Assembly: GCA_051294905.1 (NCBI GenBank)
Contig: CM119384.1
Location: 10,106,001 to 10,170,000, forward strand
DNA length: 64,000 nt
Direction: 5' to 3'
DNA from: Botryllus schlosseri
Taxonomy: Eukaryota
Shown here: one piece after another, positions 6,017 through 58,200 of the stretch
Layout: each line of letters starts with the position of its first letter
Numbering within the stretch: the stretch's first letter is position 1
Position numbers and translations under genes: made by a program
The notes under the pieces: model-generated
What the model saw: the letters and a program-made list of their open reading frames with translations, nothing else
What the model was told of the DNA's origin: nothing
Databases searched by the model: none

Positions 6017-6533
6017 TAGGGCTGGGCAAAATCGAGTACCTGTGTGATTCGATTCTGAATCACGTAATATGCTTCGAGTCGAGTCGAGCAATCGAGTATC
6101 ACTCAATATGACGTCATAACAGAAGGTAATATGTGAAAGTTCAAATAGTTACCTTTTATGCCACCACAAATAATATAACGCCTGATATCCATCAAATTAA
6201 AGATACTTTGGTATTTTTTCGACCATACCGATTTCATTGCACTTGGTGACAATGTTGTGGGACGATCATGACTTCGGAAATGTGCTAGTTCCAGTAACGT
6301 TCGTAGCTTTGTACGAGTTGTTTCGTATACTGCGTTACGCCCAATCAGGGTTTCAAGGCTTCAATAGTGAAAATTACTGTCGAAACTATTATTCTCGTTG
6401 ATAAATTAACTTCTAGTGCCGAGGATCGTATAAATTCAGTACTCGAAAAAATCGTCGTTTACTACTCGACTCGAATCATGACAATTAATACTCGATTCAG
6501 ATTCGAGTACTCGAATCATTGTGCCCAGCCCTA
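6017..6533. mobile_element. Non-autonomous hAT element (family A), 517 bp
   Basis: TIRs TAGGGCTGGGCA / TGCCCAGCCCTA and a perfect 8-bp TSD GTCTCGAC. Confidence 0.93.
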
Positions 6534-6659
6534 GTCTCGACCGTTAAGGCGTAAGTTTATGTTCCCTGGTAAGTCCTCGTCGAAATTGTTGGCAAAGCGA
6601 CGGAAGATATTGATTTTATGAGAGTATTATATCCTTTAATTGCCTCAGTTGATACATTT

Positions 6660-8399: not shown

Positions 8400-11300
8400 T
8401 CACACCGCCGCGATAACGATCATGATATGCTGAATGTCGTTAATGTTAGAGAGCAGGTCCCGCGCGTGGCATTGCAGGTGCTTCGTGGTGAAGTCGCACG
8501 GCGGGAAAACGTGGAGTACGTACTGCAAAGGAACGACGGAGATGTTGAAATTCGGTTTGAAATCACTTGACAAAACAATTGCTCGTAGCCGGCGAGGCAT
8601 GGTAGCATCAGAAGTGTCTTATCAATTGAGGCATACCGACCTGCAAATCGCTACGCATCTGTTGATGCTGCACATTGACGATTCCGGCGGCTTGTTTCTG
8701 CTTCAAATAATCAATGAAGCACCGCTTGAGGGCGGTCTGTTGGAAGTTCACGTCGGTCTTGTCTCGGCCGCACGGCAGCGCCAGAAGTAGACAGTAATCG
8801 GAATTTTCCTGAACAAGGACCACACACGGTAATTCCGTTGATATGCTTCGGGGCGGCGACATTTCAGTCGCTAATCCAAATGTAAACGTAACTCGTCAAA
8901 GCGTCGCTGTTAGAAAATATCGAATCGTGACCATGAGGTTTATATTAAACGTGTGCTATAGCCGTGGTCCTCAACCATTCTCAGATTGCGGACCGGTAAA
9001 ATTACATAACAAATTTGCAGGCTGGCGAGCCTTGAAAATATATATATTAGCCTCAAATGTAATTAATACAAAATACAGCTACAAGGTAAAGTCCCGTTAA
9101 AACCACTGATTTGACTTTGATTGATTGATCGTATTTCTATTATAGGACTGCGACTTTGCTGTTTGCTAGCTTCTAGTAAAGTGCTAAATGTCGCTGAATT
9201 GTACTGTTGAAAATGTTGTTGAAGTGTGGTGATCCGCAACTAGGCAATAATTACTTTCATCTGATTAGTTACGTTTTATAGTACAGCGTCGCCTTATCGT
9301 TACCGTGTCATTCTATTCTCTTCTGTTCTGCTGTCGGTTGTGTTCTATGTTGGTTAAAGCCACATTGGTTACCTTTGCTTTAATAAAGCTTCAGTCAGTT
9401 ATTCAACGCAATAGTCTGTTCACGTCATGAAGCCTTCACTGAATCAGTCTTAAATGTGTTGAAGGCTACTTTCAAATAGTTTGGTACAACCCTTGCGTCA
9501 TTGTGAGATGTGATTATACGCTCGTCCTATGCACCTGATGTTGCAGAAACATCAGTGTCGGCGACAGGCGCTGAACTCTGGTACACCCTTAAATAGGGGG
9601 TGCGTATTATACACGGGTAAAGCAAGCCTTGAAAAAAAATCCCTCGATCAAAAACTTGATATCACACCTTTCTTCATGTTTGTTTAAATCGCGCATCACC
9701 TCTAGCCATTGGCCCCGTAATTCGTATTATAGAGTGCAACGCGCTGCCAAATAGAGAAGTGTGTTGCCAATTAACGAAAAGTGTGTTTCTAATTAACGAG
9801 AGTCGTCTGCAAAGCACGCGATCTCTTGCTGAGTCGGTTTGCCGTTTGTTCGCGAGCGAAATTAGGTCGCTGATTGCTACCGGCGTGCGCGGCAATCCTT
9901 GTTGATTTATCGCGTCAACGACAGGCCTTAACAATCGCATACACAAGAGGCCATGCGCGCAAGATATAATCGCTTGCGTAATCAGTCGCATCTCCAACAT
10001 GACTGGTGCGCCCGACATAACCGTTGGCCTGAGCAATCGCATCTGTAATTGTAATAGGCCACGTGCGAAAGATGTCGTGTGTCGCTAGCCTGAGCTATCG
10101 CGTCGCCGACCTCACAGGCTTTGGCTACTATCTACTATCGTTTAGAGACAATGCCGGTAATTGTATTATGATTAGCGTTCATCATGTCATGATTGTTCGA
10201 CAGTGACATCGCAAAACAGAACAACATCGAATACTAAACTGCAACTATTCATGTACTCATGTACTGCGAATGCAGGGTGCGTACTATACACGGGTACAGG
10301 CTTCTTCCCAGAATATGCACGTCATTTTAAGGGTACGTATTATACATGGGGGCGCACTATATTCGGAAAATTACGGTATAATACGTAGCCTGAAAATGGC
10401 ATGTAGATTCTGGAAAAAACCCTGTACCCATGTACCGTACGCAGTACGCACCCTGCACGAGCAGTACATGCGTAACTGCCGATCATACAAGCTTCTCGTG
10501 TTGACGAACTTGCGCGTATGATAAGTTACCAGCGATCGTTATGTTTTAGTAGTGGCGAAAATCGATTAGGCACGGTGTAGTCTGCTCGCGGCGATTCGAT
10601 GTCATTCTGTTTAGCGATGTCTTAATGATCACTAATCATTATACAGTTAACGGCATTGTCTCCAAACGATCGTAGATAAGAGCCAAAGCCTCCAAGGCCC
10701 GAGGCGGGATAGTTCAGGCCAGCGACGATATCTTGTGCACTAGGCCTATTGCAGATGCGATTGCTCAGGCCGACGATTATAACGTGCGCACCAGGCCTAT
10801 TGTAAATGTGATTGTTCACGCCAGAGCATCCAGGCTTGTTGTTGACGCGATAAATCAGGCCAGCAAGGATTGTGTGCTCACCGCTCACGCAGCTACCAAT
10901 GACCTAATTTCGCTCCCGCACAAATGGCAAACCGACTATGCAGGAGATCGCGTGCTGTTGTGCAGCACAGACGAACCTCGCTAATTGGCAACACACTTCT
11001 CGCTAATTGGCAGCGCCCAACAACACTGATAATACGAATTGCTGGGCAGGACGGTTGAATGTGATGCGCTATTGCCAACAAACAACAAAGACCTTGTGAT
11101 GTGATGGATTTCAAGTTTTATTTCTAGGGAGATTTTTTTAAAGAATTGTTGTACCAATGCATGTGAACAGACCCACGCGGCGTAATAGATTGCGATTTGC
11201 ACCAACACAAAAGAAAAGAGCAGAAGATGTCTTTGCAGGCTCTTGATATTGATAGTTTTGACTCCTCTGAAATAAGTTTCAGAGTGAACGGAGGCTTCGT

Positions 11301-15100: not shown

Positions 15101-18100
15101 GTATATTTGAAATATAGAAAACTTTTGGTTTGCTGTCAGCATGCAAGAGTTTACCAGATCAACTTACAGGGCATCATCGCAGGAGTTTGAGAGCTTGAAA
15201 ATCGGTTCTGCGGAAGACCAAACGGCTGTTGAGCATGTCCCTGTCAAAAAATACGGTACAAACATCGCAAAATGATCGAATCAAACCGCAATTTCATCAA
15301 TACCTGATTATGAATAGGCATCATAGATTCTGGGTAGCCTAGGTACGGCGTTTTTGGGGCGTGCGAGTACGGTATGCGAGAGCTGTGCTCCATCGCGTGC
15401 GGCGCACTTGTCGGGGTGCTTTTTATCGATACTGCGGATTGAGACGGTATGCTGGCACGTGGATGATGCAACGCCGAAGGCGCGTTGGCGAAGGAAAGCG
15501 CCGGGTCGGACGGCTTCTTCGAAAGCTCTGAAAACCGAGTAGGAACAAAATATTTAGTAGTCAGACGACAGTTGAGAGCAAATGCGATGTAAGAAAGGGA
15601 CCAGACGTAGTCAAAGTACTCAAGTGTTAAGTTTTTGACTACTTTTTAGACAAAAAGTTTTTTCTAGGCTAAACTACTCATTTTTACGCTTTGGATTTTG
15701 TATAAGTACAGGGTAGTTTTGTGATATGTCTGCATCATTTTTACGAGTGAAATCGTGATAACCAAGCAAACTACTTTGATCAACCCAGGTTATAAACTAC
15801 GACAGACAGACGGTGAGAAAAAAGCATCGATCAGGCTTATACGATTTGAAACGTTGACGATAGTAAGCAGATACCTGGCCGGCTGCTCGGTCTTTGCAGG
15901 AAACCTCCGACAGGCAACGTAGATACCGCCGCAGTCCGCGGCTCCTGAGCAACGACCGGGCTTCGAGCCGGGGCACCGTGGCTGCCGACAGATATCTGGG
16001 ACCTCTGCGGCTCGGGCGGTGTGCCGCGTGACGGCAATGCGGAAGGTTGATTTCCGGAAGCTACTGAAACGGCAACGACTGAAAACAGATAAGTTAAGAA
16101 TACAGAAGGCAGTAACCGTGACATTGGTCTTACAGGGATTGGTCGAAATCTCGGAGCTTGTCGCCGTCGGTGACGGTTCTGGCGTCGGTACGGTCGTGAC
16201 AAACTGTTGATGGAAGAGACTTTGAGTTAGTTGTGATCGAGATATGCGAAAACTCCTTACCAACAGCGGATCAATTGTTCAGCAATATAAGGTTACAGCG
16301 CATAGACCATGTGTAGTGCGGTATCATAAGCGACTCAAGTAATGCTACTTTTTCATAGCACTCAAGTCGGTTTTGTTCACTTGCGCTGCATACTCAAGCA
16401 GTTGATGTTAGACTGCTTCCACTTGGCAGTTTTCAGTTTTTTAGTTAGGACTAGGCCGAGAACACTTAATTAATAAGCAACATGGAAAGTGGAACTTTTT
16501 TTGTTTTGGAGTAGAAATTCACGTTACTTCTACTTGAGTGTCGTCGATAACTACTTTGACAACCATCTCAAATACAAAGAGACGGCAGAGGCAAAATCTA
16601 TTAGCTCACAGCAGGGTTGTAACCAAGTCACTAGGTTCCGAGTCACAAGTCAATCTCACTTTCATAGTTCTGACTCGAGTTATGTTCAATTCACCAGAGA
16701 GTCAAGTCCGAGTCCAAGTCAGAGAGTAGACGGTCGAATCCGAGTCATAGCCCGAGTCCAAGTCATTGTGTTTACTGTTCAGTTTTGAGTTCAATCGGGT
16801 TCAGCCTACTTTTTCAACTCTGCTCGAGTGATGTAGAATGGCTCGCATTCATAATATCGTAATTTTCCTCATTCCTAACAGTTTCTGGCCAGATTTTCAA
16901 AGTGAGACTGATAGACTAAATACTATAATGTGGTGACTTTACTATTCTACGAAGTTACAATGAAATGTCGGCCGTCCTAGTTTCGAGTCATATGACTTGG
17001 ATCGAGTCATGTCCAATGACTCGAGTACAAGTCAAGTCAATACATAAATTGACTAGAGCCGCAAAAAAATCATGATTCAAGTCGAGTCATTACAACCATG
17101 GCTCACAGCTCAACCAGTTCAAAGTGCACGACGTATTCTTACCGGTAGATTCTGGACCGGCATCGCAACATTGGTGCTGGCGGGTTGGCTCACGTAAGCA
17201 GGACGATTGTCGGGTTCAACGGGGAGACGCGCAGGCTCTGGCGCGGTCTCAGATCGCACAACCTAAAAACATATAACGTGACCCCCCGTACAAACACAAA
17301 TAAATAAACTCCAACCTGTCTCGCCTGCACGCTAGCAGAATTTACGTCACTCGTCTGGTACGTCCGCTCAGAGCGCGACTCGGGAAGCGAACTGACCCAC
17401 GGCGTATCGATGGCTTTCGGTGGCAGTTCACCCACAGAATCACTGGACCGTATTTGGTCATCCTCCAGGGTCAACGACCGCTGTTTCACAAACGATTCGC
17501 GCCCATCAGCAAAGTCCGTCCGGACCGACGGCAACTCCAAATCGGACTTGTCCGCAGAGACCTTCCGACTGTTGTTCCCGGCAACGAAACTTTCTTCGTG
17601 GCATTTCTCAAAGGCCGCCTGCGGTGACACTTCCCTACTGATAATGTCCGGTGCTGTGTCGTAGCTCGTTGCTGGCTCATTTGAAGTGGTCTTGTCTTTA
17701 GATACCCGCCGAGAACTGGGCCGAGGCGAGGCATCAGACAGGAAACTGTCTGCGGGCCGGTCTTCGTCGGCAAAGTCACCAAAGAGACCCTCGATCGCGC
17801 TGACCGCGGCCGCCAGTTCGTTTTCTTCCGCCGTGGACCGTTCCTTGGCCAGGTCACTTTCCACATCCTCCTTTTCCTGACTCGACTCGTGCCCCTTTTC
17901 GTTGTCTTCGCTTTGTGACTCGTCGCGACCAGGGACCTGCTTCACAACATCAGCCCCGGCATCTACATCGTCACTCTCAGTCTTGTCCGCAAAATTTTGC
18001 TGATTAGGCACGGTCTCGTCGACTTTAACGTCAGAAAAGTACGAGTCTGCGTCCGAGCTTTCGTCAAGAATACCCATAATGGACCTGACCGCTTCCTCCT

Positions 18101-21100
18101 CTCTTTCATGTGATATAGACTTCATCTTGTCCATATTCTCTCGCCTATCCACGACACCAAAATGATGCCTGCGCTGCCCCGTCGGATACCCAGCGCCCGG
18201 TAGGTTAGGCCGTTCGCGCTTCACTTCGCACAGGTCGTGCGATCTTTTCCGATCACGGGGTTCTGAAACTTTTTTCAACGGGGACAGCGACCTTGGACGC
18301 GGCGGCACAGGGAGCTTTGTCGGAGATTTTGGTTTTCGTACAGACGGTAGAAGTATGTCCGCCTGTGTGTCACGGACATCGCGGTCTTGACGCAGGACAG
18401 ACAAAGCTGATTTCACGGCCGATTTTTGTTCTTTATCGCTGTCGTCAGACCCGCTACTGAGAAAACTCCTTTCGCGTTGCACCACCAGCGCCTTTTCGAC
18501 CGGTGAAGGCCCGGCATCCGCTTCGGTCGGGACAGTTTCTTCGCCGTGGTCCGGCAAAAGTTGACTTTTGTGCACGTCCCGAGACGAGTCATACTCTTCG
18601 TCGATTGTGAAGCCGATATCATCATCGTCGCTGTCTGAACCAAAAAGTGAGTATGTGATATCTTTATTCTGGTTTTCGTCGGTTTTAATAGGTTCAGGTT
18701 TCTTTGGAGATTCAGGTTGTACAGGCGCAGCGACTTTTTTGTGCTTCTTCAATTTGTCGCGGTCTTCCTTGCCAATCTTATCGAGACGGTCCTTTTTCGT
18801 CCTTTCATCTTTCCCTTTCGCGCTCTCCGACTCGCTTCTGGAAAAGTCAGCCTTTTTGTGTTTTTTCGAACTTTTCTTCTTGTGTTTCCCAGTCTCCCTG
18901 TCAGGCTTTTGCCACGATTCTTTGCGGTCGTCTTCCGGCTTTGGCGCTGACGACTTGCTAGATATTTTGGGATCTTTCTTTTTGATCAATTCCGATTTTT
19001 CGGTGTCGTGTTCCGGTTTCTTTTCTTTTGCCTCCGTCTTGGACGATGACTTCTTATCGGAAACGTGCTCCGGCGCATTCTTAACGGGGTCTTTCCTTTT
19101 TCCGATCTCCAAGTCTACCTTGTCAGGTTTCGAAGACGACTTTTTGTCAGGATCGCGCTCCGACGCCACTTTACCCGGGTCTCTCTTTTTGGTGCTTTCG
19201 CCTAATTCCGATTTTGAGATTTTACCGGAATCTTTCTTTCTCCCAACGTCATCAAACTTTCCGGACTTGTGCCTTTTCTCCGCGTCACGTTCCGACGAAA
19301 TTTTAGAAGAATCTTTCGGTTTAGCGGCTTCACCGAATTCGTGCATCTCCGATTTTGATAACCTTTTATCCGAGTCGCGTTCCGACACCGTTTTAGTCAA
19401 ATCTCTCTTCTTACCGATTTCACCAGGGTCGACTTTCCCGGATTTCGCCGACTTTTTGTCCGAATCATGATCAGACGCGATCTTGGGAGAATCTCTCCTT
19501 TTGCTCGATTCGCCGAAATCATACCTCTCCGATTTCGAAGACTTCTTATCCGGGTCTTTCGCAGAGTCCTTCTTTTTCGCAGCCTCCACAGACTCAGGCC
19601 TGGACTGTTTCTTGTCGTGGTCGTGTCCCGGAACTAATCTTCCCGAATCGCTTTTACCGCTCCGCGACTTTTGGTCTTTATGCTTTTTAGCTTTCGCCAG
19701 CGATTTGTCTTTCGGCTGATGCACGAGAGGGGACGATTTTGCCGATTTTGATTCCGGCTTGTCGGCGGCGAAGCTCGGCGATGGCTCGCGACTAGCGTCG
19801 GACTTCTTTACTTTCGTGGAATGCTTCGATTTCAACTTGAAACCCACATCAGGCTCGTTATCGGACGATAAATCATGCTTGCGTTTCTCTTTTTTCGCCA
19901 TCTTCGCCAGTTTCTTGGTAGACTTTCCGTCTCCTTTCTTCGAGGTCTTCTCCGATTTTTTACTCTGGACTTTGTGATCAAACGCTGCAGTCGATACAGT
20001 GGCTTTCGCGTCCGGCTTGGGCGCGAGAGCTTTGAGCTGAGGTTTCGGGGTTTTCTTCGGCGGCGTCTCCGAGTCGGAAGAGTCCAAATCGTCGGAAAAA
20101 GCCATGGCCGACCGTTTGGGGAAAGACTTTTTCGGAACAGAAATCTCGTCCGAACTCTCCGAATTGGTCAGCGACATCACCAGCTGCGTCTCAGACATAT
20201 CCGAATCGGAACAGCTGCCAAACAGATGCTTGCTCTCAGTTTCGGGCTTCAAATCTTTGATTTTTGTCCCGGATTTTTTCTTGCGCTTTTTTTCCCGAAA
20301 AACATCGGCAGAGCGCGAATCGTCTTCGCTCGCCGAAGAATCAGAGAAAGAGTCCCGGTCGTATCCGACCGGCATGATCGTTTCGCTTTTGATGGTTTCC
20401 GTCGTCAGCATGGATGACCGACCGGCACCGGTCGCGAACGGCTCTAAAGATGAAGCCGACGACATACTCCAATGACTTTTCGAACGCCGGCTGCTATCGT
20501 CTACATCCGACCATTTCTCGTCCTCGCTGACGATTCTGCTTTCAGATTCATGCGGAAATTTCGACACGCCCGAAGAAATTCCTTCGTCCGCAGACTCGTC
20601 TGAAGAATCGGACGATATCACGAGTCTTTTCTTTGCGGGTTTCTCGTGCTTTTTTGTCTTTTTCAATTTTTTCCTATTGTCGACAGGACCGGGCACCGTT
20701 TTGGAAGACGGTGGTGCGGAATGGGACGCCTTGAGATCGGAATGGGCCTTCACGCTTTTAACCTGTTTAGACTCTTTTTTGGTGAGCCCGCTTTTCTCCG
20801 ACGTTTTCAGCAGGTTTTCGCTGGTCTTCGATTTTTCGACAGGATTCTTCTTGCTTTTTTCGCATTCCCTGACACTTTTTCCATCTTTGTTTTTACTGTC
20901 CGACTTGTCCTCTGACGTGGAACCGACAGTTTTCTTCTCGGAATGTTTTTCGCGTTTGTCCAACCCGTGTTTTTTCTTTTTCTTCTTCACAAAATGTGGA
21001 GTCGTGTCCACCCTACTCTCACTACCTTCCGGCCGTATCGATGGAGATTTCGATTCGGTCAATTTTCTGTCTTCCTTTGCAACAGCAGAACCGAAGACAT

Positions 21101-24100
21101 CACCTTTTTCACGCTTTTCCGCCTTAGCCTTCGCTTTTTTATCCGTTTTCGCGTCAGCCGGCACGGATTTTTTCTCGGAAATTTTCTTTTTCGAAACACC
21201 GTCATCCGTTTTCTTGTTGCCAGACTCCTCTTTGCTTTTATGTTCCTTAGTTTTTGCTTGAGAAGTCTCCGCATCGTCATCACCCGCAGTACGCTCCAAA
21301 ACCTTCTCACTCGTAGCTTCTTTATCGCTGTCCTCGGGTTTTGCCCTTTCCTCGCTTACCTTCGACTTTGCATCCGACTTTGTTTTGTGCGCGTCGCCTT
21401 TCGGTTTTTTGTGACTGTCCTTTTTAGCGATCTTTTCCTTTTTGGCCTCCTTCGAGATCTTGCGTTTGACGGCGATTTTCGGCGTCTTCGGCAAGTCATT
21501 TTTGCCCGGAATCTTCTTCTTGCCGACCTTCGGCCTATCCTTCGTGATTTGCGCATCTTCATTTTCGCCAGACGTCAACGGGACCTGTTTTATTTCGCCG
21601 ACCACGTCTACAAATTCATCAGGCTTTTTCGATATCGCGTCACCGTCAACCGTTTCAGCTTTCGCAATCTTTTCCGGCCGAGTTTCTGCATCACTCACAA
21701 CTCGATCCGTTTCCATTTCTGATTTCGAATCTTCCGTTATTTCTTCGACGACATTGTCATCGATAATAACGTCACCGAGATTTCCCGAGTCCTCTACGTC
21801 CACAGATATCTCCATACAGCCGCCCGCTTCTAAATCTTCAGCGCACACGCTCTCCGCATCTACCTTGAGCGCGTCCTGCTGCATTTGTGACGCGTCTACA
21901 CATTCCGAGACAGGAGAAACAGTGCGGTCTTCTGATATCGCAGACTTTGCCGGACTATTTTTGCTTGAATGTGAAGGTATAATTTCAGTATCGCATAGGT
22001 TTTGTGAGACGCAGGGCAACTCTGTGTCTCGTTCTAAAGAGTCTGGTAGTAGAGTAGGCTCCTGCTCGTGTTTTGATATCTCTCTTGTGTCTTCGCTGCC
22101 ATAATCCATCGTCGATGTGTTAGTTTTCTTCCCGAACGCATCTCTCGGTCTCTCAGCAGTTACGGGAAGGTCAGAGCTGCTGAGAGAAAGCACGTTTTTT
22201 GGCCCGTCGCTTGAAGAAACAGGGGTGGGCGGATTGCACGGCACCGGGTCTACCCCGGCGCTCGGCGCGACCGAATTCAGTGGGACCGGTAACATCTGCG
22301 GTACAGGTACTGGCTGCAGAAATTTTGAACCGGCAAACAGCGGGACGTTTAAAGGTACCGGAGGTGCGGACATGGGCGCGGCGTTGAATTCGTTGCTGGA
22401 CAAATGGTCGGAGATGTAAGAGAGTCGCGCCAAGTCTTGGTCGATTATGCTGGAGCTGTGTAATAAAAAGCGGAATTGTTACATCGCGCCAGCGGCTTCG
22501 CACATTGAGGAATCTGCATTCAGAGGATCGAGAGTGCTTTGAAATTATCTATGTACAATAGCAGAGGTGGTCTATTGAAGTACCAAATTATAGTTCACTG
22601 CCTTAGGTTGTGATGCAGTGGCCCATGATGTGCAGAGGTGACTCAAGTAAACATCTTGGTTCTCAAGTAAAGGGGAATTAACGACGTGAATTTCAACTCA
22701 AGTACGTACGCGATTTCCCAGTAAGTAAGCATTCTAGTCCGAGAAAACAGTAAAATAGACGAGTGGGAGTAACACAAGAAGGCAAAACCTACTTTCGTCC
22801 GTACTTTAGTTTCTGGCCACCTCTGGTCAATAAAACAATCTACCAGCATGTCAGAGTACAGACTCTTTACTCTAGATCTGAAAGTTCCAATCTCAGACCA
22901 GCCTACGAAACTCACCGACACAATTTAACATCGACGCCGACCGCGCCATCAATGGCCACGCGTTCCAGGGTCGCGGCCTCGGTTTTCACCTTGACCTCCG
23001 ACGCCAGCCCCGAGCTTCTCTTTTTCACTTTGCCCAGCAGCTTGAGCCGATCGGTCAGCGAAGGCCCGGAAGCCGGACTCTGCGACGAGGCGCCGGTGTC
23101 TGTTCTCCTGTTGTGAGCCTGTGTCGAATACGTCCGGTTAGCAGATATCGCCGATAATTGAAGTTTTCCAACGATGCCATAACCACATAAGCTAGGCTAG
23201 ACAGACGTGGTATTTCAAAATTCATTAAAAATTTGTTGTCCTTAGTTTCTAACCAGTACTGTGGGCATAAGGTAGTAACAGGCCAATTGAATCATCGGGC
23301 AAACCTAATATACATGGGATAATATATGCACTAGGGGTATTCAAAAATGACTTTTTTTTTCTCAAATCGTACTGGCAACTTGATAAAATTGTTAGGTTAC
23401 CTAATTTAAGCCTACACACCAAATTTGGCTCAATTCCAGCCATTAGCCGCATTGCTACAGGAGAAGAAAGTTTCGATTTATTATATAAAAATAAATAGGA
23501 CAAATATTTAAAAATTTTTTGTTAACCCCATGAAAGTGTTGGGTTGTCTATAGAAACGCTGTTCACCAAATTTGGTTCAATTCCAACCAGTGGAAGCGGA
23601 GTAATTGCCGTCGAAAAATTAGAATTATGAATAAAATAGTATTTACGGTGACCAATTCTTTAATTATTTATTATAGTGTAAATACTATTTATATATACAC
23701 CGTGTATACTATTTTATTCAAATCCAAATTTTTCGACGGCAATAATTCCGCTTCCATTGGTTGGAATTGAACCAAATTTGGTGAACATCGATTTTATAGA
23801 CAACCCAACACTTTCATGGGGTGAACAGAAAATTTTCAAATTTTTTGTAATTTATTTTTATATAATAAATCGAAACTTTATTCTCCTGTAGCAATGCATG
23901 CGGCTACTGGCTGGAATTGAGCCAAATTTGGTGTGTAGGCTTAAATTAGGTAACCTAACAATTTTATCAAGTAGCCAGTACGATTTGAGAAAAAAAAAAC
24001 ATTTTTGAATACCCCTAATATGCACGGATGCCTTATTCCGTACCTTTCGCGGAAATTTTGTCCCAATTTTTGGCAATGAGTCCGTGATGACAGTTTGTCA

Positions 24101-44507: not shown

Positions 44508-44905
44508 GTCAAGTACTGTTTTAATTATTTAGGGTCTTTCTGTACGATAATACTTTTCATTCAGTGTACAGTGCATGCCTCTTCTCTTCTCTATACTTCG
44601 CCTAGGCCAAAAGGTGGGTGTCTGAACTCGAAGACTATTCAAAGTCGTTTCGGGATTTTCCTATCTTTTCATTGTATGGCAGTTTTTGTGGTGTTTTGAA
44701 ATGATGAAAATAATATTAAACTAATATTGATACTAATAACGGCTCCACATAGCTGTATATTTCACGACTTGTTAAAGTACAATTCCTATTCCGTTCTATG
44801 AAGTATATACCAACATTATATCAATTCATCCAAACGGTTGGCTTGCGTCAATTCTTTAATAGATTGAAATACCGTGTTGTTAGCAATACCAATTTGATAT
44901 TTCAG
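44508..44905 (+). other. Candidate 5'-UTR intron of CLINT1
   Basis: Donor AAAG|gtcaag at 44508 and acceptor atttgatatttcag| at 44905, 29 nt before the ATG. The acceptor could instead be a trans-splice site. Confidence 0.45.
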
Positions 44906-44934
44906 TGGGTTTGGTAGAAATAGGAGCGGTAAAA

Positions 44935-46764
44935 ATGAATCTTCTACCATGGAAAATCCGCGAACTAACTGACAAGGTTACTAATGTTGTAATGAACTAT
45001 ACTGATGTTGAAGCTAGAGTTCGTGAAGCAACAAACGATGAGCCTTGGGGGCCGTCCGGAAGTCTTATGCAAGAACTTGCAAATGACACATTCATGTACG
45101 AAAGTTACTCGGAAGTTACTGGAATGCTTTGGAAACGTATATTCCATGAAGGCCGAAGTAACTGGCGACGGATTTATAAAGGTCTTCTCGTTGTTTCATA
45201 TCTGATTCGTAACGGTTCGGAACGATTTGTTACCAGTACGCGGGAGCATATAAACGATTTGAGAGCGTTGCAAAATTTCACTTACCATGATGAACATGGC
45301 AAGGATTTAGGAGTCAATGTAAGAAATAAGGCAAAAGACCTTGTAAGTTTTATTCGTGATAATGAGAGGTTGCGAGAAGAGAGAAAAAAGTGCAAAAAGA
45401 ACAAAAACAAATACGTCGGCATGTCAAGTGAAGATTCAAAATTTGGTTTCTCTCGTCAACGTTATCATGAAGATGAGTCTTATTCAACAAACAACGATGA
45501 CCGATCATATCACGATTCTGACAGCTATGGTAAACAGGCTGAATCGAATGATTCCATAGGATATACGGATGATTATGAGTCAAAAGATGATAAAAATGAA
45601 GGCAGGTGGTCACCAAATAAGGGAATCAAATACAGCTTCAGCACGGATAGCCTAGAACACCCAAGCGACAAAGAAACTTACGACGACAGGAATTCTACGC
45701 CGAAATCGACGGGAGCAAATGCAGGCCGTGAGAAAAGGTCTGTCCAGCCATCTCGCAAAGTAGACTTGGGCGCTGCTGCAAAGTACACCGGGGATGGAAA
45801 GGAAAAAACACAATCCTCTACATTAGCCGATACGTCGGTGACTACGTCACAACAACCTGACGAATTCGCCGACTTCGACTCGTTAGCTGCATCGCGTGAT
45901 CCGTCCAATGACGCCAAAAGCCCAGCCCCATCCGGAGATTTCGCAGATTTTTCTGGCTTCGGTGCGACCGGATCAAATAATGCTGGTCAGGGATCGTCAT
46001 CAAATGTTGATTTACTCGGTGGTTTGGTGAATCAGCCCATGACAGGTAATATACCAGCCTTTCCTGGTAATTTTCCAGCACCGCAAGCTGCACCGATTGC
46101 TGGCATGCAGCAACCTACATTATTTCAACCTCAAGCTGCTAGTTTATTTCAACAACAACCGACATTAATGGGTGGAAGTGTGCCTCAGCAACAGACGAGT
46201 TCAAACAATCTGGATATTTTCGCATCAGTACCTGTTGCAACCAATCAACCGTTGTCTCCATCAGCTGATTTGCTGACTCCAATGCAAAACAGTACACCGA
46301 TGGCTCCACAGTCTTTCCAACAATATCAGCCTGCAACGCAAAATATGCAAAGCACCACTATGTCTGGTGGAGAACAATCAAGATCCGCGAAACCGAATAC
46401 TTGGTCCGACGTGAAAGGATTGGATATTAATCTAGATTTATTTTCCAAAGCAAACCAAAAGTCTGTGCGTCCGTCAATGAATCAACTGCAACACAGAAAC
46501 CCTAATGTCATGACTTCTGCAATTCCACAGATGAACCAGCCTGTGGGCATGAGGCCGATGGCCCCGCCTCAGATGCCAATGCAAAACACCATGCATCAAT
46601 CCCATGTCCCCGGCATGCAGCCAAACATGGGTTCACCGTATAACATGTCCGGTGCTTCAGGATTTAATGGACAGTATAACATGCCGGCGTACGGTAATAG
46701 CATGTCAGGAAATCCTCAAATGCAAGGTTTGCAGGCGCAGGGCAGCTTCAACAGGCTGTACTGA
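44935..46764 (+). CDS. CLINT1: Clathrin interactor 1 / epsinR / enthoprotin, single coding exon, 609 aa
   Basis: ENTH domain KIRELTDKVTNVVMNYTDVEARVREATNDEPWGPSG...WRRIYKGLLVVSYLIRNGSERFV. It has EFADF/DFADF GAE-binding-type motifs, DLL motifs, and an M/Q/P-rich C-terminus with PNTWSD. The ATG at 44935 follows AAAA; the GTG start in the ORF track overlaps a splice acceptor. Confidence 0.93.
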   Translation: MNLLPWKIRELTDKVTNVVMNYTDVEARVREATNDEPWGPSGSLMQELANDTFMYESYSEVTGMLWKRIFHEGRSNWRRIYKGLLVVSYLIRNGSERFVTSTREHINDLRALQNFTYHDEHGKDLGVNVRNKAKDLVSFIRDNERLREERKKCKKNKNKYVGMSSEDSKFGFSRQRYHEDESYSTNNDDRSYHDSDSYGKQAESNDSIGYTDDYESKDDKNEGRWSPNKGIKYSFSTDSLEHPSDKETYDDRNSTPKSTGANAGREKRSVQPSRKVDLGAAAKYTGDGKEKTQSSTLADTSVTTSQQPDEFADFDSLAASRDPSNDAKSPAPSGDFADFSGFGATGSNNAGQGSSSNVDLLGGLVNQPMTGNIPAFPGNFPAPQAAPIAGMQQPTLFQPQAASLFQQQPTLMGGSVPQQQTSSNNLDIFASVPVATNQPLSPSADLLTPMQNSTPMAPQSFQQYQPATQNMQSTTMSGGEQSRSAKPNTWSDVKGLDINLDLFSKANQKSVRPSMNQLQHRNPNVMTSAIPQMNQPVGMRPMAPPQMPMQNTMHQSHVPGMQPNMGSPYNMSGASGFNGQYNMPAYGNSMSGNPQMQGLQAQGSFNRLY

Positions 46765-49219: not shown

Positions 49220-52200
49220 TTAGGTAAGAGTGACGGACTGGCTTTTGTTACGCTGCCACATGTCCGCGAGGCATCTCTGGCTTGCAAAATGACTGGCCTT
49301 AGTTCGATAGCAAGCGTCCGACTGCTCCTTGGGAATGTCGGGGTCACAGTACTTTTGGTGGAAGATATGTATCAAGTCGACTTGCCGTGACCTGAACACG
49401 TCTATCCCGGACTTGATCAAGGAGAGAAACAACCTGATGTCTTCCTCCCCCCAGCCTTCTATCGACAAGTCAAAACCACCGGTCCTTATAAAGTCGGACT
49501 TGTGCATGCACGCTATGCCAAAGCCGAAGTCTCGCCAGAAGCCTCTGTTGGAATTCAGCGTCAAGGGAGTGTGTTTTATCGCGTCACGTTTTTCCCGTAT
49601 ATCGACAGCTCTTCTGTTTGCGAATTCATTGCCCGCAACCTCAGAACCATCGTTGTAACAAAGTTTTTCAGGATCGTATTGACTGAACGATACCGGGTAC
49701 CATACCGCACTGCCTTGTTCCGAAATCGCTTGGCATTGCTCGGCAAGGTTTGGCGTTACAATCATATCCACGTCCATAAAGAACAAAATATCGTTCTCTT
49801 CACCGATTAGCGAGCCCAGTTGGATACCTGTAAGACAGAGTGCATTGCAGCTTTCGGCTTATGTTGAATTGCGGCAGTATGGGTACTAGTTATAAATAAT
49901 TGAATGCACAGCAACAGCAGTTGGATGCATTTGGAAATGGACACTGTTGAAAGCACACGAACACAAAGTCCACTCGATGAATCTTTAAAATCATCTCCAC
50001 GGTGTTTAAGCATATAAGTGAATTTTGCGTTAACACTGTGATATTAAACAACTGCAAGGAAATCTATGTTCTGTATGTGCGATATGTGCAGCCTTCTCAC
50101 CACATAACACCTTGGTGACAAGTATGTTCGATATGGTATGCTTACGAGTGATAGACCGATATGTTTCCTTGGTTTGGAGCTGTCCTAGCAAAAAGTAAAA
50201 CTCCATTGAGAATATCAGCGATGCTATAAAATGCACCGAGGAAGACATACCTGTCATAATTCTGATTAAAATCATGACAAACCTGACCTCTAGGCCTATC
50301 ACTCATTCAGGAAGTCATGCTATGCATGATGAATACATTTTATAACAGCAAATTTTAGTACGTAGATTTTACTGATAGGCCAACTGCTATCTATCAGTTT
50401 TCAATTTCGCTATGCTCGAGTAGAGCAGTGGTTCTCAAACTGAGGGGGCCGTGAAGGCATCTGAAGGGGTGCCCGAAGCTGCGGTGAACTGAAATTTTTT
50501 ACATGCAATTTACCTCCATTACGTAGTTTTTAATCTGTGAATAGTCTGAATTTCATATTTCACAATTTTCCCATGAACAGTCCTAACCTTCCATGCACCC
50601 AACTATCCGTTGGGATTGCTAGGATTCTGGTTGCATTTTGTGATATGACGATATAGGGGGCGCAAAATTTTACAGTATCATAAAGGGGGAGCGGGGCGTG
50701 TCTAAAAAAGTTTGAGAACCACTGGAGTAGAGCTACTGCTCTATTCACTAACAGAGTGACTTAGACCAGGTGTCCAACCCACTGCCCAAGACCAAATGTG
50801 GTGCAATACTCCAAGAGGTTACTTTGTGTGACCTCAGACACCGTATTCTGCCACTGGCTGTGTTTCCAGATTAATGTTGCTTATGGAAGAAGTACTTCTA
50901 TTCGTACTTGAGTAGATTTTTTCGTCACTACTTCTACTTGAGTAGCTTTCTTGACTACTTTGACCACCTCTGTGTAATAGTGACTGGAGTTAAAACTCAA
51001 CACCGCTGTCAGACGGTGATAATACGGCCTATGAACATCTTCGACATTTGCTGTCTCGAGGGACTATTTACAGGAAAGTATTTCTTACTAAAATTCTCAG
51101 GATTGTCTAGAAATGTGCTAGATAACACAATAATTTTTCCATTTAATCAGAATTGCAGCGCGGGCCTGATGCGGGCTTTATGTGTGCCTTGTTTGCGGGC
51201 TTTATGCGTGCCCTGTTTTAGATTATATCAAGTTACATCGGCAGAATATATCTGGTTCGTTATGCTGACGTAGAACAGGAATTGGAGCATCAAACCAAAT
51301 CTCAACTTTAAAATCCTAAATCAGTGATTTTTTCTGGCTATCAAAAGAAGCCACTGGGATAAGCACGTAATGGCAGCAGCAAGTGACCACCAAAAACAAA
51401 CTCACCCGCCCCTCTCGAGAAACCCCTGTCCCCCGTGGAAGCGACATGATACCGGACGAGCTCCGCCCCGTAAGTGCTCCGGTAGCTTTTCAACAGATGC
51501 GCGGAAGCCAAATTCAAGCCCAAATCGTCCCCTCGATCGTCTTTTCCCAAAAGCACGATCGCCAGCTGCACCCCAAGACCGCCGCGAAGCTTGCCGTCGC
51601 TTAGCTGCGCCGGCTTTAGAAAATCTCTCTCGTACCTTTCCATAAAGAGCTCCAAGGCTCTGTACCGTCCTTGCAAGGGCATTACGAAAATAACTTTGCT
51701 CTCTTTTCGATATGGAGGTACCACTGGCGTGTCGCCGCCCGTGTTTTTATGTGATGCATCCTTGTCGCCTCCTGTTAATATATCATTCATTGCACGTTCC
51801 AGTATACCTTTCGAAGGCGCGAGGGCCTTCCTCAGCGAATCGTGTCTCTCCGTGATCGTTTCCTCTTCGTGCATCATGACGGCGCCGTACGACGCTTGCG
51901 ATATCGTCCGGCAAAACTTGATTGTGGACCCGGCCGATGAGCGGTGTACGGTAACGGCGCGAACCCCCTCTAAAGATCCGATCTGCATGTAGCCGTAGTT
52001 GAGCTGCACGTTTGTGGGGAAATTCGGACACGATATCTGCATTAGGTTGCTCTCAATGTCTACCAACGCGTTTCCTATCGCTTGCTTCTCAACCGACGAA
52101 TGACCTGGTCAAAAATGTGATATGTAAGTTGTATCGCAAGCAGTTGGTGAACGACTGAATGTGTGCTCGAGTTCAACAGCAAGAAAAAACATAATTTGAA

Positions 52201-55200
52201 ACCGTACGAGCCTGTTTGAGTGTTTGCTATCACTTCTTCTCCGTCGACGAACGACCTGTTCAAGCCAGCCATATGAAAGTTGTATTGAAAACAGTCGGTG
52301 AACATGAACGACTAAAAGGATGTTTGAGTTCAAGAGTAAGATATAATATAATTTGAAATCCTATAGGCAGAGTTTTTTAACCTTATGGACGCGATCCTTG
52401 ACCGGAGGTGAATTACACTTGAAGAGACTCTTGGAGGCACTGAACCTCTATGCACAATTGTATATTCGTAATTAATAGGGCAAGTTTTTGTTGCACTAAA
52501 AACCTGAGAAAGTTGCATTTATTTTTTCAATTTTAACAAAAGTTGAAGAAGTTGTGTCGTAAACTGACTATTGCGTTGAATAACTAACTGAAGCTTTATT
52601 AAAGCAAAGGTAACCAATGTGGCTTTAAGCAACATAGAACACAACTGACAGCAGAACAGAAGAGAATAGAATGACACGGTAACGATAAGGCGATACTGTA
52701 CTGTACGACGGAACTAATCAGATGAAAGTAATTATTGCCTAATTACGGATCACCACATTCTACCCCCCTTTCATTTTGTAAATTCACATAGAAGAATGAC
52801 ACAAAAACATCAATGACTAACAAAATTACCATACCGATCCGGCTGGCGCCTAACTCTAGTTGAACGCCGAAGCTCGACGTCTAGATTTCTACTCGACTCA
52901 TCTGGTGCATCCTCTGAATGGTTAGATTCTTGAGGCTCTTCATCAGATGACTTCAACTCAACGTTACAAACTTCGCGACTTGGCTCGTGGCCATCGATAT
53001 CAACAGAACAAGGTTCAGCTTGTTTCGTTTCAGGATTAGTCGATGGTGTTTCTTCTCCAGTAGGAAAACGGGCCAAATCGTTGAGTGAGACGTTTGACTC
53101 GCGGCCGTTAGGAAAACGAACAATGCGTAAGTCGGGTTGGCTTCAAGAAGTTCGACCTCAGAACATAGTTCGTCGCCCTTGTTTCTGACGAATTTGCGTA
53201 AGAAAACTGGCCCCGGTGTCAATAGCCAGGATGGCACGCTATTCCCCACCATACTTTTTCTTGGAAAGGAAGAAAATCGGTCATGCGGTGTTGAATTAGT
53301 TGACGCGCAAAGTAGCGATCGAACTGAATGTAGCGCATGAGGAAGGGCGTCAGCCCAACATGATTCTGAGACTCCGGTTGATTACAAAATGAGTTTGATA
53401 GTTCGCCATAATGTTTGATTAGGGCGTTCGCACTGCGAATTTCCTGTTGGGTGGTAAGGCGTAGTGAAGCTAGTTGCAACCCCGCGAGAATGTAAATAAT
53501 CCTTGACTTCCTTGGACACGAAAGCGGTGCCTCGGTCACTGTGAACGTATCCCGGAAGTCCAAAAACAGCGAATAGTGTCGACAAACACGAAACGACGAT
53601 TAGCGCGGAAGTGTTGCGACATGGAAAGGCGAACGGAAAACGACTATATTCGTCTCTGACAACGAACATGAAACGGGATTTGTTAGATTTCAAAGGCCCT
53701 TTGAAGTCTACGTTGATTCTTTCCCAAGGTTTCGTTGCTTTCACAAGCACTTGCGGATTGCATTTGTAAAAATTTGGTTTGATCTGAGCACAAATGCGGC
53801 AACGAGCGCAGGTCTCACGGACGTCATTTAGGGAGAACGAGAGATTTTTCGAACGAACGAAATGATGCAGCCTTGTGGCTCCTGGATGACCCAGAGTGTC
53901 GTGTATGCGATTTAGATTAGAACCCAACTCACAGGGTGAAATCGATGCGCAATACGAAGATGTGGTCCGCGAAAACATATCAGTCGCAACATTCAGTGCC
54001 CCCGGTTTGTGTACGATATCATACGAAAATTGACCAAGTTCGACACGCCACAGCTGGATTTGGTATTTTTGATTTTACCTTTAGATTTGCCGTCAAACAT
54101 GAACGCGACAGATCTTTGGTCAGTAACAAGAGTGAAATGTCTGCCATGTAAAAAATGAGCCCATTTACGAACTGCCGCGATAATTGAGGACGCTTCTTTC
54201 TCAACAGAGGAGTAGCGTATTTCACTTGGCGATAGTGCTTTTGACATGAACGCGACCGGTCGACCGTTTTGACTGAGGATAGCTGCAATGGCTGCATTGG
54301 AAGCATCACACTCTATTGTGAACGGACTTGTCTCGTCAATCCTACCAAGAGACGCGTCAACTGACCCGCGTTTTAAATCGTTAAATGAGATACATGCATT
54401 TTCGGAAAGCGGAAATTTTTCGACTGAATACAAAGGACGGATTTTGTCGGAAAAGTTGGGCAACCATTTGGCATAGTAGGCAAACATACCACACACTCGT
54501 TTTAGTTCTGGGTTGTTGCGTGGCGGCAATAAATCGATTAACGGCTTTAGTCTTTCTGGGTCCGGTTTGATCACGCCATGCGACACGCGATAACCGAGCA
54601 AGTCTATTTCCGTAGAACGCATGATCGACTTCGAATGATTGAAAGTGAGGCTGAATCGCTGAGCGACATTGAGAAACGAGTCGAGATTTCGATCGTGGTC
54701 GTCCTTATCCATATTGCAAACAGTAATATTATCGAGATAAGCGAATGTGCCGGTGAGCTTGTTGTCTTTTATGACGTTGTCTATTATTCTTTGAAATGCC
54801 GAAACTCCGTTGGTGACTCCAAATGGCAATCGACGGTATTGGTAAAGATCTCCAGCGGCTTCGAATGCCGTATACGGACGATCATCAGGTGATAGTGCCA
54901 CTTGATAATACGCGGACTTCAGATCTAACGTACTGAAAACTTTGAAACGGGCGATGTTGTTGACTTGGTCATCGATCCTTGGTAAAGGATAGGCGTCTAG
55001 TAAGGTATACCTGTTGACCGTCTGAGAGAAGTCGATGACCATGCGCTTCTTGTGTCGACCGTCATTTACAACAAGAACCTGTGCTCGCCAAGGCGATGAG
55101 GACGGCTCGATGATTCCTTCCTTCTCGAGTTTAGCAACTTCCGCTTTAATGAAATGTAGATCGGCTTCGCTGTATCTTCTGGATTTAGTGGCAATCGGTT

Positions 55201-58200
55201 TACAATTCGGTGTCATAAACTTGAAAATTTGCGGTGCTTCGACACACGCTTGAGCAACTCCGCATACACTGTACTTCTGATCTCGAGGGAGTTCCAAGGT
55301 ATCTTTATCTCCGTCCATATTGAAAATGACCCGTTTATGCAAGTTCATGAAATCGAGACCAAGCACCACATCAGCGCATAAATCTTCCATCCCTTTAAGA
55401 GGGAATTCCGTATATTTCGTTTCGTTTACAAGAATGACCGGTCTGTAGAGTTCTTCAATCTTGCGGGAATGGGATTTAGAAGCAAATGTAACCGTAGAGG
55501 AGTACGGAGTGGATTTCAGGTCAATTTCGTTGGCGTATCCAGTGCTTATGAAGCTTTCCGCGGAACCGGAGTCGATTAAAGCAAATGTTATGTGGCAGCC
55601 GATCTTAACCACGATTCTTGCTTTTATGAGACATTTGGGTACTCCGATGGCGCTGAAGTATGAGATCATTGCAGTTACTGTTTTCCTGTTGTCGGTGGCC
55701 TTTCTCATGCAAACCACTTCATAATGACCTAGGACTCCACAATAGCCACACTCGCTCCGTTTCGCTGGACATTTATATCGGGAGTGGAATGACTGACCGC
55801 AAAAAAAGCACTTCCGATCAGGTTTGATTGTTTTGCTCATTGCGTTGAGTTGACTGTGAGTTTCTGTGGATGATAGTTCGACTTCGGGATTCAAAGATTT
55901 TTCCAGCGGTTCGACGCCGACAGATGAACATGGAGTGCTGCAATAGATACTAGAGCTTCGCTGGGCGAATTCTAATGAGCGGGCTTTTGAGATCGCCATT
56001 TCGAGGGTTACAGCCCTGTCACTTTCTAATAATCTCTGTCTGCTAACGTTTGATCGGAGACCAGTAACGAAAGCGTCGCGGATGGACTCCTTGCGATGAT
56101 CTTCCGCCGAGATAGTCTTGAATGTGCAATCTTTCGCCAGATCTGCCAAGGCGCGGGAAAATTCCTCGATCGTCTCTTCGGGCTTCTGAATACGGGTTAC
56201 TAGCATGTGGCGGACGAAGATTTCGTTCTTTTGCTTGATATAAATTTTGTCGAGAAGTTCTATTGCGGTATCGTAAGTCGAACTTTCTTCAAAATAGGAA
56301 TAGACAGACGACGACACGAAATTTGTTAAGATCTTAAACTTGTCGATCTGTGTATCTTGATCAAATGATGAAAGAAAATTATCGAAGGTCTTCTTCCAAT
56401 GCTTATACTGTTTTTCAGCAGAGGCGGAGTCCGGACTGATATCGAGCTTGTCTGGTTTCAGAATCCTTTGTGCCATAATTCTATGTTGCTTAAATTGTCG
56501 TAAACTGACTATTGCGTTGAATAACTAACTGAAGCTTTATTAAAGCAAAGGTAACCAATGTGGCTTTAAGCAACATAGAACACAACTGACAGCAGAACAG
56601 AAGAGAATAGAATGACACGGTAACGATAAGGCGACACTGTACTGTACAACGTAACTAATCAGATGAAAGTAATTATTGCCTAATTGCGGATCACCACAAG
56701 TTGCATTTTGGCCACATTTTGCTCGGGTGACTAAAAAAAAAGGCAATTTTCCGGCTCAGCTCCCGAAATACCCGTAAAAGCGTTATTTCGGTGCTGATTT
56801 ACGGTGTTTCAGTTGAATTTGACTGTGTATTTCACCAAAATCTAAAATACTTTCATGAAAAAAATGGACAAAAGTTGCACTATAAGATTCCTTCAACGGG
56901 CTTAAAACAGAATTCTACATATCTTACGAGTATTTAGGAAGCTGCCGGAAGCTGTAAAAAAAAGTTGCAAAAACTTGCCCTAGTAATTAACTAACCCGAA
57001 TATGTTCGGCTGACAATTGTCAGGGATGATCGACAGCAATTAGTTCAAAATTGAAAATAACATTGTATATTATTCTATATACTGGTTGTTGATTACACTT
57101 GTGGTTTAAATATCAATAATTATAACAGAAACAGCATGAAAAGGACTGTCGCATATGGAGCGGGTCAGAATTTACTCAAGGTTGAATCCAACTTCGGCAA
57201 CTAGGAAATACTCGAGATTGCCATTACTGTTCAGACTGTGTGACACGAGACAAAATTCCTCTGTCGTCACATTTATACACCAGAAACCGGTAGCTAAGGC
57301 CCGGCGGAAACAAAAATCTACTTCTCCCGAATGCTTCACCTCAGTGATGTTTCAAACAAACAGGATTCAATATCATACAAACATCGACTAAAAAAAGTTC
57401 ACTTCAATTACGTAATCACAATATATCCTTTTACACCAGCTTCACTTCAACTAAAGGAATTTGGTAGATTTGACCATCAAACACCATTCAGATAGACTCA
57501 TTAAATTTTGGTATCACCGGTAACAAATATCAAAAAACAAGTTGTGAAGACCCCTCATCCTCTATGCTGGAATTGAGCGTATCCAAGGATTTACGAAGCG
57601 TGAACGTGATCTACGATACAAACGTAATTTATTTCGAGAGAAACTTGATTATAACTCTTTTTTTAAATTGAAGCTTGATATTGACCTATTCAACACCGTT
57701 GGTTTATTAAAAAATATTTGATCGCAGTGCACCAAGAGCTGGATAGCTTTTATTATTAATTACCCTTCGTCATTGCTCCAAAGTCAGAACATCAAGATGC
57801 TTATTGCACCGTATTGCCTGTGTAAAACATATAACATCTGTAGTATTCCTTATATTAATGACAATGTTCATACGTCAAATTGAAAGGTGCAACCAAGGCA
57901 TTCTGGAACCAATAAATGAATTTTTTACTGGCTTATCAGCCCGACAAGCATGCTGGTCATATTTCATTGTTCACCAATTTAGCAACTACAATCTGAAGTG
58001 TTTTCAGTGAGTTACAGCACGGTAGCATTTTATAGTTATTTTGCAATTATTTGTCGATCAACCGCCAATGAGATAACAGTATGGGTGCTCAGTTCCAATC
58101 CATCACACCAAGTATACAGGATTGGTTAGCAAAATTTCAGAAAATGGACAGCTCATGATAATCATTACTTGCCACTACGAATACCAAGAACCAGGAACGA

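Follow-up and report, generated by a model that had tools for sequence, protein, structure and literature searches.

Candidate self-priming from the long terminal repeat in a large clade of compact animal Gypsy retrotransposons

A 64,000-nucleotide (nt) stretch of Botryllus schlosseri DNA (contig CM119384.1 of assembly GCA_051294905.1, forward-strand positions 10,106,001 to 10,170,000; hereafter, the window) contains a Ty3/gypsy-type retrotransposon in which the 16 nt that nearly adjoin the 5' long terminal repeat (LTR) are the exact complement of a segment of that same LTR. We estimate at roughly three in four the probability that this 16-mer is the primer-binding site (PBS) for minus-strand synthesis and that this synthesis is primed by a fragment of the element's own RNA. 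The same arrangement recurs across a large clade of animal Gypsy elements of compact build, with a length of about 4 kb, a single open reading frame (ORF), LTRs of roughly 150-310 bp, two zinc knuckles and no chromodomain, and self-priming of the kind known from the Tf1 element of Schizosaccharomyces pombe appears to be the best explanation of this pattern. An earlier note on this DNA, made from the sequence alone, had proposed self-priming for the single element in the window; that reading is supported by the present analysis and is widened to a large animal clade.

The element is located on the minus strand of the window, and all its features are described on that strand. The note's account of the 5' junction proved exact: the LTR ends with ...ACGACA, a single spacer A (56495) follows its terminal CA, and the proposed PBS, TTTAAGCAACATAGAA (56479..56494), comes next, separated only by TT from the gag ATG. 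As also claimed there, the PBS is a perfect reverse complement (16/16) of LTR positions 119-134 (56565..56580), the proposed self-primer arm, which ends with CTTAAA and is followed by GCC, and whose counterparts in relatives covary with the PBS. An identical 16-nt arm is present in the 3' LTR (52624..52639), after which there is no PBS. With up to two mismatches allowed, the 16-mer is found four times in the window, compared to 0.12 occurrences expected, all within this element family. The RNA of positions 56590-56470 folds at -32.3 kcal/mol (z = -4.1), and the minimum-energy structure includes the 16-bp helix along with a small hairpin, GCCA(CAU)UGGU (56554..56564), which begins immediately after the arm and is stacked on the primer/PBS duplex. 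The two flanking signals pointed out in the note are in place as well, namely, an initiator (Inr)-like TCAGTT 4-9 nt upstream of the arm (56584..56589), which is a candidate start region only, and a canonical AATAAA 23 nt downstream of the arm (56536..56541), likely the poly(A) signal of the window copy.

A protein search yielded more than 1000 relatives of this element, most of them encoding about 1200 residues in a single ORF, on contigs roughly 4 kb long, and loci were fetched from metagenome contigs (80 loci), from named genomes and from further public assemblies. For each testable relative, the 32 nt preceding the gag ATG were compared with the 268 nt upstream, and the longest exact reverse-complement match was recorded, a test for which LTR boundaries are not needed. 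An exact stem of at least 10 nt was detected in 33 of the 43 testable relatives (36-59% protein identity), with a median length of 13 nt, whereas in controls, the longest match averages 6.1-6.4 nt and reaches at least 10 nt in only 0.6-1.1%. Four further elements (five loci) show the stem when inspected by eye; it either contains one or two mismatches or had been missed on account of a start codon annotated too far downstream. The AT-richness of the region could be taken to favor a chance match, an explanation to which we assign virtually no probability and which we count as already refuted: in 1720 composition-matched shuffles, the match never exceeded 12 nt, and the same geometry recurs, with covariation, in dozens of relatives.

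In the relatives with a stem, the 10-19 nt that follow the terminal CA of the LTR and one A pair with a segment of the element's own LTR located 24-70 nt upstream. Where both LTRs are available, the 11-16 nt after the 5' LTR are the exact reverse complement of an LTR segment 29-69 nt before its end, and the paired sequence differs between elements. The minus-strand primer of an LTR element must anneal adjoining the unique 5' region (U5), so that the LTR end is set by the position of the primer; the PBS begins one base past the terminal CA in the window element and in most of the relatives for which both LTRs were mapped, and the trinucleotide CAA directly precedes it in all 26 aligned relatives. 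The stem occurs in two named hosts, with 13 nt in the sea anemone Actinostola and 12 nt in the sea cucumber Apostichopus japonicus; a 14-nt stem was found on a contig filed under the woodlouse Armadillidium, which its source flags as possible contamination, and the locus L089 has a 15-nt stem. The stem is still present at a protein identity of only 36-38%.

Several loci show variations on this layout. In L015 (1762-1995 and 5704-5939) and L009 (1786-1991 and 5650-5846), the match between the two LTRs continues through the PBS, and a PBS-like sequence also follows the 3' LTR, which points to tandem elements with an LTR in common or to a recombinant structure. In L003, L009, L064 and L086, nothing separates the PBS arm from the gag ATG, and the helix would extend up to the start codon, a configuration that could couple translation and priming.

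The PBSs of these elements are diverse: more than 20 different PBS 12-mers were identified, at least four of them in a single assembly (WLWD01). Each of these fits the LTR of its own element, and this speaks against a host RNA primer common to them. A host tRNA, a tRNA fragment or another host RNA might nevertheless prime synthesis, the match to the LTR being a side effect, for example, of a helper stem between U5 and the PBS, and there is precedent for half-tRNA priming without TGG in copia-type elements (PMC6317226). We consider such priming very improbable. The PBSs differ at almost every position beyond TTTA, even within one assembly, whereas a shared primer would fix the PBS while the LTR drifted. 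Furthermore, the trinucleotide TGG, the complement of the CCA end of tRNAs, is missing from the window PBS, as the note had observed, and begins none of the 26 PBSs in the aligned relatives. The ATG comes only 13-34 nt after the first base of the PBS, and the PBS fills most or all of this stretch, leaving no room for another primer site.

Quantitative evidence on the relationship between the two arms comes from 26 contiguous arm-loop-PBS stretches (18 nt, loop, 18 nt) that were aligned as they stand, anchored on the LTR end. In the resulting 18-pair helix, 88.7% of the cells are paired compared to 64.5% after shuffling, a level that none of 500 shuffles reached; two-sided changes occur in 16 of the 18 pairs, and there are 111 compensatory cells versus 36 in shuffled data. 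The covariation score is 0.646, as against 0.183 for shuffled data and at most 0.17 when the partners are slid by 1-3 columns, and RNAalifold, run without a supplied structure, recovers a 13-bp consensus helix in the same columns. The arm and the PBS thus change together, and their complementarity has been maintained in evolution. The note had asked whether family members freely break the complementarity between LTR and PBS; across the 43 relatives, pairing is kept through many different sequences and by compensatory changes.

The form of this covariation is informative. In the core pairs 7-15, the nine most variable ones, there is not a single one-sided (G-U) state, whereas swaps, such as AU to UA or AU to CG, are numerous. 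Such swaps cannot pass through a wobble intermediate, so this is the pattern expected if one arm is copied from the other; selection at the RNA level alone would yield a pattern other than strictly Watson-Crick covariation.

Among the 26 aligned members, the LTR arm nearly always ends with a hexamer resembling a poly(A) signal. The hexamer is canonical (AATAAA or ATTAAA) in 11 of the 26, and in these no second canonical hexamer precedes the LTR end; in four others, including the window copy, the arm hexamer is non-canonical and a canonical one is present in the loop, and the remaining 11 have near-variants only. The arm is directly followed by GCC or ACC (RCC) in 23 of the 26 members, and in 24, the nucleotide next to the arm is the first of a small hairpin, which would be stacked on the primer/PBS duplex. 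The apical loop of this hairpin holds a canonical ATTAAA in L007 and L084 (ACCUC-AUUAAA-GGUG).

These features bring up the alternative that the stem is only a regulatory RNA structure, either masking the 5' poly(A) signal or hiding the start codon as part of a switch between translation and packaging, with priming accomplished by something else. The distribution of canonical hexamers between arm and loop is compatible with this possibility, as is the abutment of the PBS arm on the ATG in several members, and the hairpin that hides the 5' poly(A) signal of human immunodeficiency virus 1 (HIV-1) is an established precedent. Against it, the stem starts exactly one base past the terminal CA of the LTR, the place at which priming sets the LTR end, and no other primer site fits between the LTR and the ATG; the helix is also kept in the 15 of 26 members with a non-canonical arm hexamer, and the missing G-U states point to copying rather than to RNA folding alone. 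Taken as a replacement for priming, a regulatory structure is therefore rather unlikely; it suits a second function of the stem better.

Self-priming would proceed along the following lines. The LTR segment 56580-56565 of the genomic RNA would fold back over a 70-nt loop and pair with the PBS, after which the element's RNase H would cut right after the arm, between ...UAAA and GCC, making the AAA/RCC junction the putative cleavage site. The freed 3' end would then be extended through the spacer A and U5, and synthesis would continue as in other LTR elements, with the hairpin region perhaps being part of the repeat region (R) that serves the first strand transfer. The retroviral plus strand copies the 3' end of the primer and so regenerates the PBS. 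If the self-primer were likewise copied back into the PBS during plus-strand synthesis, any change in the arm would be written into the PBS within two replication cycles, and the pairing would stay perfect. A second role also seems likely, in which the duplex would mask the poly(A) signal in its 5' copy while the 3' copy stays open; only the 5' LTR is followed by a PBS arm, so masking would be limited to the 5' copy. In HIV-1, the poly(A) hairpin similarly places the poly(A) hexamer of a repeated leader within a helix, for which the apical-loop hexamer of L007 and L084 can be compared, but in the present clade, the masking helix would be the primer/PBS duplex itself and would form at the 5' end only.

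This scheme can be extended to a pan-metazoan, very large clade of chromodomain-less Gypsy elements that dispense with host tRNA, in which a single module of 10-19 nt would be the self-primer, often the only poly(A) signal, and the mask of its 5' copy, with the PBS rewritten in each cycle. We put forward this broadest version tentatively, as possible but somewhat less than probable.

The scheme calls for a transcript that starts upstream of the arm. In a few relatives, YCAGTT motifs are found 5-18 nt upstream of the arm, and no consistent TATA box or downstream promoter element (DPE) was found at a fixed distance from the arm among the relatives. The ends of the Logan contigs L087-L089, which break about 30 nt into the LTR or show a 31-nt circular overlap, were considered as transcript ends and rejected as de Bruijn graph behaviour. 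If transcription instead started past the arm, the arm would belong to the unique 3' region (U3), and the primer could be the copy in the 3' LTR of the same or a co-packaged RNA. The same arm is indeed present in the 3' LTR, and where the arm holds the poly(A) signal, its location in U3 would correspond to the layout of some retroviruses. We know of no precedent, though, for such a copy acting as a primer, and R would be squeezed between the start and a poly(A) site 10-30 nt past the hexamer, that is, into about 15 nt or less. The abutting hairpin found in 24 of the 26 members, moreover, makes structural sense only with arm, hairpin and PBS on one 5' leader. Priming from the 3' LTR is, on balance, improbable.

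Several self-priming systems are available for comparison with the arrangement that we favor, a primer from the 5' leader. In Tf1, the PBS is paired with the first 11 nt of the transcript, and RNase H cleaves between nt 11 and nt 12 (PMC7175516); the Tf1 leader forms a three-duplex "pretzel", and self-priming is regarded as the common feature of the Tf1/sushi sublineage of chromoviruses (PMC10085805). Tf1 and Tf2 of S. pombe, Tj1 and the Tf1/sushi group resemble the present clade in lacking a tRNA-type PBS and in having a PBS that adjoins the 5' LTR and is complementary to the same LTR; they also share the foldback geometry, in which the primer's 3' end points into U5, and a structure that abuts the duplex (PMC7175516, PMC10085805, PMC4600332). 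There are also differences. The present clade has a duplex of 10-19 bp, compared with 11 bp in Tf1; an arm that ends with a poly(A)-signal-like hexamer followed by the conserved RCC; no chromodomain; two zinc knuckles; and animal hosts. Whereas the Tf1 arm consists of the first bases of the transcript, we infer the location of the arm within the RNA of the present clade. The hexamer and RCC at the arm end, together with the hairpin abutting the duplex, are new features relative to known self-priming, and we found no report of a poly(A) hexamer within a primer in the searched literature. The earlier note had proposed a longer, 16-nt duplex as a distinction from Tf1; the window copy does have 16 pairs against the 11 of Tf1, but this is one value within the family range of 10-19 nt.

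Outside fission yeast, self-priming has been predicted for the plant Gypsy element Tcn1 and for the copia TAR elements (Houba, Osr-1), in these cases too from complementarity between the LTR and the PBS (PMC6317226). These are plant lineages, Tcn1 being a relative of Tf1/sushi and TAR a member of another superfamily, whereas the present clade consists of animal Gypsy elements.

A number of observations weigh against self-priming or limit the case for it. Three loci, L001, L048 and L066, have no detectable stem, and L056 and L058 look rearranged. Stemless L001 is the closest relative by reverse transcriptase (69% identity); in this locus, gag and pol are separate overlapping ORFs, the LTR remnants are about 75% identical, and a PBS-like TTTAACCAACTG follows ...CACAA, for which no intact matching arm was found in the locus, so that L001 is probably an old, decayed copy. 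The elements used for the covariation analysis were chosen for having a stem, a bias that anchoring on the LTR end limits but does not remove. The poly(A)-like hexamer at the end of the arm also means that conservation of the arm may in part reflect polyadenylation rather than priming. There is no clear TATA box, and Inr-like motifs are seen in only some members; if transcripts started downstream of 56565, the 5' arm would not be in the RNA. The Tf1-type pretzel is not evident in this clade, where the loops align poorly and a single abutting hairpin was seen rather than two PBS-adjacent duplexes. Finally, the ARAGORN search for tRNA genes was confined to the window and 44 related loci, where none was found.

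The note had also remarked on two gag CCHC knuckles and on the absence of a chromodomain after the integrase. The two knuckles are confirmed as CX2CX4HX4C motifs, and their cysteines and histidines are invariant in 25 aligned relatives. The absence of the chromodomain holds for the relatives: none was detected in seven full-length relatives at E<=0.05, and PF00385 is absent from the Pfam lists of the 120 matches listed; the C-terminus of the window copy likewise gave no chromodomain match but is itself broken. The clade thus appears to lack the chromodomain that characterizes the Tf1/sushi chromoviruses. Two zinc knuckles are typical of the Mag and Micropia/Mdg3 lineages, whereas chromoviruses usually have one (PMC2577118). 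With the Mag lineage (the A, B and C clades, and SURL of sea urchins), the present elements share the two CCHC knuckles (PMC2577118), the absence of a chromodomain and short LTRs, the mean LTR length in Mag C being 174 bp (PMC3601003), although their LTR length and termini are only loosely similar to the published Mag C motif (PMC3601003). Mag/SURL and the Cigr-1 clade of Ciona also have marine invertebrate hosts, echinoderms included, as does the present clade. The compact single-ORF layout presumably resembles that of Cigr-1 as well. Membership in the Mag C (SURL) or Cigr-1 clade is therefore plausible, on the basis of the two knuckles and the missing chromodomain rather than of a phylogeny. 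We found no paper on self-priming in Mag, SURL or Cigr-1 elements in the searched literature, older subscription papers being beyond our reach.

In the literature that we searched, self-priming is treated as a hallmark of the Tf1/sushi chromoviruses, with additional predicted cases in two plant lineages. If it is also the priming mode of one of the most abundant animal Gypsy clades, tools that seek tRNA-type PBSs will misjudge such elements, and host defences based on small RNAs derived from tRNA fragments that target the PBS (PMC7472051) would not touch this clade. The relative age of tRNA and hairpin priming in LTR elements would also become testable, by mapping the priming mode onto the reverse transcriptase tree; the idea that hairpin priming preceded tRNA priming has been raised previously (PMC3601003). 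Should the clade turn out to be far from Tf1/sushi in reverse transcriptase trees, self-priming either arose more than once in the Metaviridae or is ancestral. A single short module combining primer, PBS duplex and poly(A) signal would exemplify genome economy in a 4-kb element.

The complete element in the window spans 4144 bp (52555..56698) and is a defective copy, delineated by the LTR pair, the target-site duplication (TSD), the polypurine tract and the domain order. The 5' LTR (56496..56698; TGTGG...CGACA) and the 3' LTR (52555..52757), compared with each other, are both 203 bp long and 98% identical, with TG..CA ends; the flanks of the element carry the 5-bp TSD CAACT upstream (56699..56703) and downstream (52550..52554), and the polypurine tract AAAGGGGGGTAGAA (52758..52771) adjoins the 3' LTR. 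The gag-pol coding region (52810..56476) was delimited by ORFs, Pfam matches and knuckle motifs. A single intact ORF of 827 codons, starting from the ATG at 56476, encodes Gag, protease (PR), reverse transcriptase (RT) and RNase H; the integrase (IN) and C-terminal part contains two frameshifts and one in-frame stop, and the copy is defective because of this damage. In the Pfam matches, the domain order after Gag is PR-RT-RNaseH-IN. By its domain order, LTR ends, TSD and polypurine tract, the element belongs to the Ty3/gypsy type (Metaviridae), and its best solved structural relatives are the Ty3 Gag-Pol and the Ty3 RT (7q5b and 4ol8). An Rfam scan of positions 52300-57000 matched no family at E<=1. 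Sequence comparison also identified a solo LTR of the same family on the plus strand (9225..9427; 93-95% identical, TSD TGAAG). In its arm 16-mer (9343-9358), one base is changed, from C to G; this arm is uninformative on pairing because there is no PBS beside a solo LTR.

The remainder of the window contains several other features. Direct repeats at 358-575 and 6319-6536 (plus strand) are about 82-87% identical and extend past the reported 218 nt. They were considered as a related LTR pair and rejected, given that they lack TG..CA ends, enclose no long ORF and show no match to the family pol protein; probably, they represent an unrelated dispersed repeat. An ORF of 1747 codons without a Pfam match (17190-22433, minus strand) is found in a region with a strong AT skew (-0.30 to -0.33) and a GC content of about 0.49, with several long ORFs on the opposite strand, and may be coding sequence that is repetitive or of low complexity. 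An ORF on the minus strand (51341-52066), about 500 bp away from the element's 3' end, is weakly similar to chondroitin N-acetylgalactosaminyltransferase (CHGN); it may represent a host-gene exon beside the insertion. An ascidian (tunicate) source of the window is made probable by a single-exon gene on the plus strand (44905-46764), which encodes an ENTH-domain protein similar to clathrin interactor 1, with the best named relative in Styela clava (51% identity) and with Clavelina and Ciona among the matches.

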